A program made the translations under genes and the position numbers. Below are positions 48,050-48,899 of a DNA stretch of 64,000 nt, in pieces. The notes beneath the pieces are model-generated. The model ran no database searches, was not told the DNA's origin, and was given only the letters and a program-made list of their open reading frames with translations. Every line of letters begins with the position of its first letter. Within the stretch, counting starts at the first letter, position 1. Origin of the DNA: Octopus sinensis (taxonomy: Eukaryota); NCBI RefSeq assembly GCF_006345805.1, contig NC_043018.1, positions 15,066,001 to 15,130,000 on the forward strand. The letters run 5' to 3'.

Positions 48050-48895
48050 GCTTCAACACACGAACTCATATAAAGAATCTTGCAAACCAAATCCCAAAAC
48101 GATATATATATATACACCTTTTCCTTGTATTACTCATTAGACTGTGGCCATACGAGGGCGCTGCTTTGAAGAATTTTTAGTCGAATGAATCGACCTCAGT
48201 ACTTTTTTTTTTTAAGACTGATACTTATTCAATCAACATCTTTTGCCGAACTGCTAAATTACGGGGACGTAAACACACCAACAGCTGTTGTCAAGCGGTG
48301 GTGAGGGTAAACACACACACACACTTTCCCTTGAATTTGATTAATCTCTCACAGTTTAAAGTTGGGACTTTATCCCCTCTTCAAACTGAATATTTCGAAA
48401 TTACCTCAGCAGAATTCGGACTCGCAATCGAAATAAAACTGAATACTGCCATACATCCGTACAAAGAACACCAATTTCTCTATTATCATAGATTGAGAGA
48501 CACGTATAACGAGATGTGATGTTTGTGCCTTCATCAAACTTGTTTCTGACGCAACTAGAATTGGTAGCAGTGGGTTCTTTCATTATCACCGAATATGATG
48601 GGGATTAGAACGACTCCCCTAAGTTACTTGCTTTTATTTAATTGACCCTCGATGGACGAAAGACAAAACCATTCTGCGGACGAATTAAACTCACAACAGA
48701 ACCGAAACTAAAAAAAATAATAAAATACTGCAACGTTTTATTATTTCTGTTAATAATAAACGATTCCTTTTGACTAAGCGAACCTAAGTTACGTGAGAGG
48801 GAAACTGTAAGTGGTGGATTTCATGGCTTTCCAAACGACCGGAATGATAACAATAAGAGCAAGAATAAATATAATGGTAATAAACTGGATCTTAC

Positions 48896-48899
48896 CCAT
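48896..48899 (-). CDS. BTBD17-like: Putative first coding micro-segment ATGG|gtaaga of the BTB gene, giving MGNWLLRLRKVKMSSSP... (482 aa)
   Basis: Good donor GTAAGA directly after ATG-G. Phase 1 matches the phase-1 start of exon 31652. It is preceded by ~300 nt of non-repetitive UTR-like sequence. Linkage across the 17-kb intron is inferred. Confidence 0.45.

Follow-up and report, generated by a model that had tools for sequence, protein, structure and literature searches.

The minus strand of a 64,000-nt stretch of the Octopus sinensis genome (CM016880.1:15066001-15130000; hereafter, the window) carries, at positions 48899-48897, an ATG that is followed after a single G by a splice donor in phase 1 (G/gtaaga; here and below, a slash marks a splice junction). 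The reading frame that stays open past this donor encodes a hydrophobic segment and runs into a second, donor-like site. A sequence-only reading of the locus, which described this start correctly, took the arrangement for a switch whereby one ATG and two donors would give rise to a cytosolic BTB adaptor, to an isoform anchored by a signal peptide or transmembrane (TM) segment, or to a 36-aa micropeptide. The question raised by the locus is which of these products the ATG at 48899 serves.

A 22,688-base locus taken from CM016880.1 aligns to the window without a single mismatch. The gene lies on the minus strand of the window. Its 470-aa product, translated from an internal ATG at 31620, is identical to the BTBD17-like protein of O. 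vulgaris and O. sinensis, and the O. bimaculoides protein differs from it at 2 residues. Comparison with Pfam revealed in this product a BTB/POZ domain (PF00651, E = 4.6e-19, residues 37-145), followed by a BACK domain (PF07707, E = 2.8e-16, residues 157-258) and by TRAF_BTBD17, a C-terminal TRAF-like domain of the BTBD17 type (PF23651, E = 6.2e-31, residues 297-464). The exon at 48899 belongs to this BTBD17-like gene, the domain order of which is BTB, BACK, TRAF-like. The coding part of this exon (exon 1a) consists of the four nucleotides ATGG (48896..48899), that is, the Met codon and the first base of a Gly codon, and is annotated as a 4-nt CDS piece; the 5′ flank of the start codon (48900..49100) is presumed to comprise the 5′ UTR and core promoter of exon 1a. 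Donor 1 (TGG/GTAAGA, 48890..48895, with a G at both -1 and +5) is identical in three Octopus species and opens a first intron of 17,243 nt (31653..48895), within which lie both the read-through ORF and an alternative first exon, exon 1b (44598..44625), known from annotated isoforms. Exon 2 (31403..31652), entered through an acceptor (ttttacag/) that is common to all isoforms, contributes the residues NWLLRLRKVK and the first third of the BTB domain, and also contains the internal ATG at 31620. The middle of the BTB domain is encoded by exon 3 (30439..30537), and the last coding exon (27938..29033) supplies the end of BTB, BACK, TRAF_BTBD17 and the stop codon (27940-27938). A scan of the whole window against Rfam returned no match.

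Splicing of donor 1 to exon 2 at 31652 is in frame, as had been claimed, and yields a protein beginning with MGNWLLRLRKVKMSSSP that comprises the full BTB, BACK and C-terminal domains and has no signal peptide. The same product is on record as XP_029649436.1 (482 aa, P0049), the 4-nt CDS piece of which (L005:3001-3004) corresponds to window positions 48899..48896. Identical 482-aa products are found in O. sinensis (XP_036368039.1), O. vulgaris (CAI9738777.1) and O. bimaculoides (XP_014775743.1), and the product of the junction between donor 1 and exon 2 is RefSeq isoform X3 in the first two species and X4 in the third. The orthologous ATGG likewise opens the gene ranges of O. vulgaris (L004) and O. 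bimaculoides (L001:10001). The gene ranges used here are CDS extents; treating the start of a range as a transcription start was rejected since the O. sinensis range of P0051, which begins at 44625, extends exactly from the ATG of exon 1b to the stop codon. The transcript basis of donor 1 in Octopus consists of NCBI models and one O. vulgaris annotation, which may derive from them, and the Logan set held no full-length Octopus transcript contig. The ATGG at 48899-48896 is a real 4-nt coding start, and its joining to exon 2 is already public annotation in three Octopus genomes. We consider it very likely that ATGG is the start exon of the BTBD17-like gene and that the 36-codon frame and the GTAACT behind it are by-products of the intron. 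Donor 1 spliced to exon 2 would then produce the 482-aa isoform devoid of a signal peptide, which is presumably cytosolic.

The DNA in front of the start codon is well preserved. Compared to O. vulgaris, the 5′ flank shows 0 substitutions and 1 indel event in 200 nt, the background between O. sinensis and O. vulgaris being ~3.2 substitutions and 0.6-0.9 indel events per 100 nt; compared to O. bimaculoides, it is 90-93% identical and nearly gap-free. A TATATAT sequence is located at ~49125-49132. Farther out, at 49760-50360, O. sinensis and O. bimaculoides align without gaps and at 90-98% identity in a block lying ~0.9-1.5 kb ahead of the start codon. Its longest ORF does not exceed 62 aa, it has no Rfam match, and it may represent an untranslated exon or a regulatory element that has been conserved.

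The junction between ATGG and exon 2 can be followed well beyond Octopus. Decapodiform mRNA contigs display 156-469 nt of 5′ UTR followed by ATGG-GTAAYTGGCTG; their uninterrupted 1449-nt ORF identifies them as spliced mRNA, and their similarity to octopod genomic DNA breaks off precisely at the boundary of exon 2. Since the decapod 5′ UTRs do not resemble the window to a significant degree, the orthology of exon 1a in these animals rests on the ATGG-exon 2 junction. At the Argonauta hians locus (L003), the 10 kb in front of exon 2 yielded neither an ATGGGTA nor any similarity to the exon 1a region of Octopus, and Argonauta was left out of the comparison. Among gastropods, the gene starts with ATGG/gtgaga in Haliotis asinina and ATGG/gtaaga in Biomphalaria glabrata, in both cases with a phase-1 intron, and an AG acceptor introduces exon 2 after 5.2 kb in the former and 4.1 kb in the latter; exon 2 of both species also completes the Gly codon and continues with Asn. 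N-termini starting with MGN are present in five gastropod lineages and in every cephalopod group sampled. Because gastropods and cephalopods share both ATGG/gt and MGN, the 4-nt coding start and its phase-1 intron are probably older than the split between the two lineages.

The frames proposed for donor 2 are correct as far as the O. sinensis assembly goes. Reading through donor 1 gives 36 residues, MGKIQFITIIFILALIVIIPVVWKAMKSTTYSFPLT, followed by a stop (48899..48789), codons 2-36 and the TAA (48789..48895) falling within the intron in a frame that is not conserved. The donor-2-like site, CAC/GTAACT (48787..48795), would end an exon at 48793 in phase 2; joined to exon 2 it creates ACG TAA and so the 36-aa peptide that unspliced RNA would also encode, and joined to exon 3 at 30537 it is in frame and predicts a protein of 433 aa. 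The latter matches positions 38-108 only of the 110 positions of the BTB profile, together with BACK and TRAF_BTBD17 (Pfam), and would thus miss about one third of the BTB domain (profile positions 1-37).

Conservation of the hydrophobic frame, the lack of which the sequence-only reading had itself listed among the grounds for refutation, did not hold among the three Octopus species. In their alignment, the 5′ flank and ATGGGTAAG are unchanged. Farther along the read-through, a 19-nt indel in O. bimaculoides places a TGA after codon 22, followed by two in-frame TAA codons; in O. vulgaris, 9 nt are duplicated, the frame is shifted by 1 nt, and 12 nt (GTAACTTAGGTT) are deleted, and with them both the GT of donor 2 and the stop codon. 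Translated, the read-through comes to 36 aa in O. sinensis and to 22 aa in O. bimaculoides; that of O. vulgaris exceeds 50 aa and ends in a shifted tail. O. sinensis and O. bimaculoides both have a donor-2-like site, and the frame at donor 2 hangs on a single C found, among the three species, in O. sinensis only. Window positions 48800-48812 (minus strand) read TTTCCCTCTC in O. sinensis versus TTTCCTCTC in O. vulgaris (L004) and O. bimaculoides (L001). This extra C could be a 1-nt insertion specific to O. sinensis or a long-read assembly error. Over its 107 nt, the read-through differs from that of O. vulgaris by 2 substitutions and 3 indel events. The corresponding read-throughs of the two gastropods (15 aa and 38 aa) are neither hydrophobic nor TM-like. 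Over the initial 66 nt of the intron, those encoding the hydrophobic core, O. sinensis and O. bimaculoides share 92% identity, compared to a regional average of ~83%; the differences amount to 3 synonymous and 2 conservative changes, and the level of identity matches that of the 5′ flank. This core might be under some constraint, be it regulatory or other. Our preferred reading is that the 107 nt following ATGG are the start of the 17.2-kb intron, and that the hydrophobic reading and the GTAACT (48792) would both have come out of T-rich sequence.

How unusual such a hydrophobic frame is can be gauged from the window itself. With an ORF of at least 36 aa scored as TM-like when its Kyte-Doolittle mean reached at least 1.6 in a 19-residue window, 143 of the 2509 ATGs in the window open a TM-like ORF, and 19 ORFs of the window are at least as hydrophobic as the value observed here (3.04). 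The strongest of the window's hydrophobic ORFs are mostly simple repeat or microsatellite, with 3 or 4 comparable non-repeat cases, and a null model based on composition only gives ~1e-4 for this hydrophobicity. The hydrophobic stretch is a mild outlier, not a typical draw. Its composition is T-rich (38% T, 14% G). A decayed (ATT)n microsatellite was considered as the source of the Ile/Leu run and rejected, Tandem Repeats Finder finding nothing in 48789-48899; T-richness and a visible NTT periodicity are what remains as an explanation. As to donor 2, it scores 7/9 against the consensus CAG/GTAAGT, a score shared by 15 of the 1208 GT sites of intron 1. Dismissal of this site as too weak was also rejected: several annotated donors of the gene equally lack a G at -1 and +5 and, these being no better than donor 2, site strength cannot dismiss it. 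The case against donor 2 is comparative, built on the alignments with other species and not on strength.

The proposal that both donors are used from the one ATG, with a 433-aa anchored protein or a 36-aa micropeptide as outcome and a splice-controlled change of topology as consequence, draws on frames that work in the O. sinensis assembly, on the 7/9 score of donor 2, on the signal-anchor-like core of the peptide (17-19 residues, Kyte-Doolittle mean of 3.0) and on the signal peptide of the vertebrate relative LGALS3BP (PMC5015019). Set against these are the TGA and the two TAA codons ahead of donor 2 in O. bimaculoides, the loss of the GT in O. vulgaris, the dependence of the frame on a C seen in O. 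sinensis only, the missing BTB profile positions 1-37 and the non-hydrophobic gastropod read-throughs. Family-wide, a signal-like N-terminus, defined by hydropathy as a proxy (Kyte-Doolittle of at least 2.0 in an 11-residue window within the first 40 aa), was found in 0 of 46 full-length close relatives and in none of the annotated Octopus isoforms. Of 94 full-length representatives farther away, a single one, 578 aa long and 26% identical, has such an N-terminus; none of the invertebrate relatives does. No use of donor 2 was found among the annotated isoforms (470, 482, 485, 490 and 498 aa). The AG/GT at the start of exon 2, which had been put forward as a route to exon 3, turned out to spell the Gly-Asn codons (G/GT AAY): exon 2 begins AG/GTAAYT in cephalopods, AG/GCAAC in Haliotis and AG/GAAAT in Biomphalaria, and no recursive-splice motif of the AG/GTAAGT type conserved apart from coding was seen in cephalopods, Haliotis or Biomphalaria. 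A topology switch through donor 2 and a signal- or TM-anchored isoform thus both go unsupported, and we regard the two-donor model as highly improbable.

A micropeptide specific to Octopus might alternatively be translated from unspliced or intron-retaining exon 1a RNA, with a core of ~22 aa (MGKIQF[IV]TIIFI[LV]ALIVII[PL]VV). No stop interrupts codons 1-22 in any of the three Octopus species, and of the 5 substitutions that separate O. sinensis from O. bimaculoides there, 3 are synonymous, an excess that is not significant (p ~0.13 by our own estimate, on the assumption that ~27% of random changes are synonymous). The C-terminal half is wholly different in each species, and the 36-aa peptide itself goes unsupported; the ATG sits in a weak context with a T at -3, nothing comparable exists in gastropods, and a regulatory or promoter-proximal constraint is the likelier cause, given that the non-coding 5′ flank is conserved to a similar degree. 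Such a micropeptide appears very unlikely to us. The chances are slimmer still, to the point of being negligible, that the 48899 exon is part of another gene, or that the hydrophobic leader is spliced to the full BTB domain by way of an unseen phase 2-to-1 exon; no support for either was found beyond logical possibility, and both are contradicted by the CDS piece being recorded for the BTBD17-like product itself, by the MGN-NWL junction in decapod mRNAs and gastropod gene models, and by the closure of the frame between ATG and donor 2 in O. bimaculoides. The 4-nt start exon followed by intron remains our reading of the locus, which illustrates that a hydrophobic read-through past a true donor can be pure intron.

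N-terminal diversity does exist in this gene, and would stem from alternative first exons 1a (48899, MG...) and 1b (44625), to which the ATG at 31620 probably adds. The 90% protein cluster includes five N-terminal variants. MGNWLL... (482 aa) starts from exon 1a at 48899 in O. sinensis, O. vulgaris and O. bimaculoides; MAPKS/NWLL (485 aa) and MAPKSIKSF[RC]/NWLL (490 aa; MAPKSIKSFR in O. sinensis) start from exon 1b through donors A/gtatca after 44613 and C/gtaatc after 44598, respectively, both on the minus strand; MLKHHLYESNRPQDVFFC/NWLL (498 aa) is restricted to O. bimaculoides, where it is isoform X1; and MSSSP... (470 aa) corresponds to the internal ATG at 31620 (minus strand). The first exons differ only in the first 1-18 residues, and all splice to the common exon 2. 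The true case of one ATG with two donors is exon 1b, located 4.3 kb downstream of 48899: its single ATG (44625) is followed by two annotated phase-1 donors, AAA/GTATCA and TTC/GTAATC, neither of which has a G at -1 or +5. The MLKHHLYESNRPQDVFFC first exon (L001:18888) sits inside a ~1.5-kb O. bimaculoides stretch (L001:17690-19208) that is absent from O. sinensis, its insertion point in the window being 42516/42517. This stretch resembles dispersed repeats at window positions 60279-59889 and at L001 4412-4755 and 30684-31028, and the exon looks like a lineage-specific, transposon-derived first exon, judging by this resemblance.

Other repeats are scattered over the same DNA. Copies of a ~390-nt dispersed repeat, probably a SINE-like element, occur at window positions 63386-63774, 54817-55240, 45790-46179, 41128-41524 and 33584-33801, and in O. 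bimaculoides at L001 ~6110-6500, 21362-21745 and 26906-27291. Intron 1 further contains two identical ORF-bearing segments ~1.7 kb apart (36382-36708 and 38070-38396; also 36421-36732 and 38109-38420), as if a retroelement-like fragment had recently been duplicated in tandem.

The choice of initiation codon may be a further source of N-terminal variants. The first ATG lies in a weak context (tattctATGg, 48896-48902, with a T at -3), as it does, with the same T at -3, in decapod mRNAs and Biomphalaria; the context of the internal ATG at 31620 (gttaaaATGt, 31617-31623) is strong, with an A at -3, and the internal Met is conserved 11-15 residues past MGN. From the weak and strong contexts and the conserved internal Met, leaky scanning past the first ATG to the ATG at 31620 is a reasonable inference.

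An MG start, and thus a Gly at position 2, characterizes octopods, decapodiforms and five gastropods, and from gastropods to cephalopods this Gly2 is followed by hydrophobic and then by basic residues (MGNWLLRLRKVK, MGNVFSRVKRRL). Myristoyl-electrostatic membrane anchors are found in "MG" proteins with a basic patch, such as the N-termini of Src or Arf. The MGN and hydrophobic/basic N-terminus of the family (MGNWLLRLRKVK) might likewise constitute an N-myristoyl/electrostatic anchor, with the BTB adaptor toggling between membrane-targeted and soluble forms, an idea that we put forward tentatively and hold to be rather doubtful. The 4-nt exon would on this account serve to put Gly at position 2 and would have been kept since the gastropod-cephalopod ancestor, and the toggle would operate through the choice of first exon (1a, MG..., versus 1b, MAPKS...) and through leaky scanning to the internal Met. 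Compared to the motif for N-myristoyltransferase, here the crude pattern PROSITE PS00008 (G-{EDRKHPFYW}-x(2)-[STAGCN]-{P}), matches were obtained only in Babylonia, Nucella and Biomphalaria; the cephalopod N-termini, GNWLLR and GNWLRR, do not match, having L or R at position 6. The mismatch makes N-myristoylation in cephalopods less probable, though no more than that. If true, the anchor would amount to a localization switch like the one originally suspected, achieved by lipidation instead of a signal peptide. The conserved MG-basic N-terminus in any event yields a testable membrane-targeting hypothesis for an uncharacterized family of BTB adaptors.

The octopus protein shares with vertebrate LGALS3BP (M2BP/90K) and BTBD17 the same architecture of BTB, BACK and a C-terminal TRAF-like domain of the BTBD17 type. 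Vertebrate BTBD17 is annotated as secreted. LGALS3BP, a secreted protein, carries an SRCR domain in addition to its signal peptide (PMC5015019). In contrast, the octopus protein, in which Pfam detected no SRCR domain, is devoid of both this domain and a signal-like N-terminus, LGALS3BP belonging to a remote branch in vertebrates. Among solved structures, the BTB-BACK regions of SPOP (E = 2e-15) and KLHL11 (E = 1.6e-14) come nearest in sequence, which suggests a role akin to that of a Cul3 adaptor. As in the SPOP and KLHL adaptors of Cul3, BTB and BACK are present and the TRAF/MATH-like domain could bind substrate; compared to SPOP, the domain order is reversed, the TRAF-like domain being C-terminal in the octopus protein, and Cul3 binding is a prediction. 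In nervous tissues of O. vulgaris, a gene named Ov-BTBD17, which may be the present one, was one of the candidate reference genes with the steadier expression (PMC10230085). With N-myristoylated MG proteins, the octopus family has in common Gly2 and the basic residues that follow, whereas its cephalopod members deviate from PS00008, and lipidation is here putative. Finally, the generation of N-terminal proteoforms by alternative first exons or promoters is a common mechanism (PMC13082882), and the octopus gene conforms to it in that several first exons feed one exon 2. Exon 1a is unusual in this respect only by its size and age, four nucleotides that are shared with gastropods.
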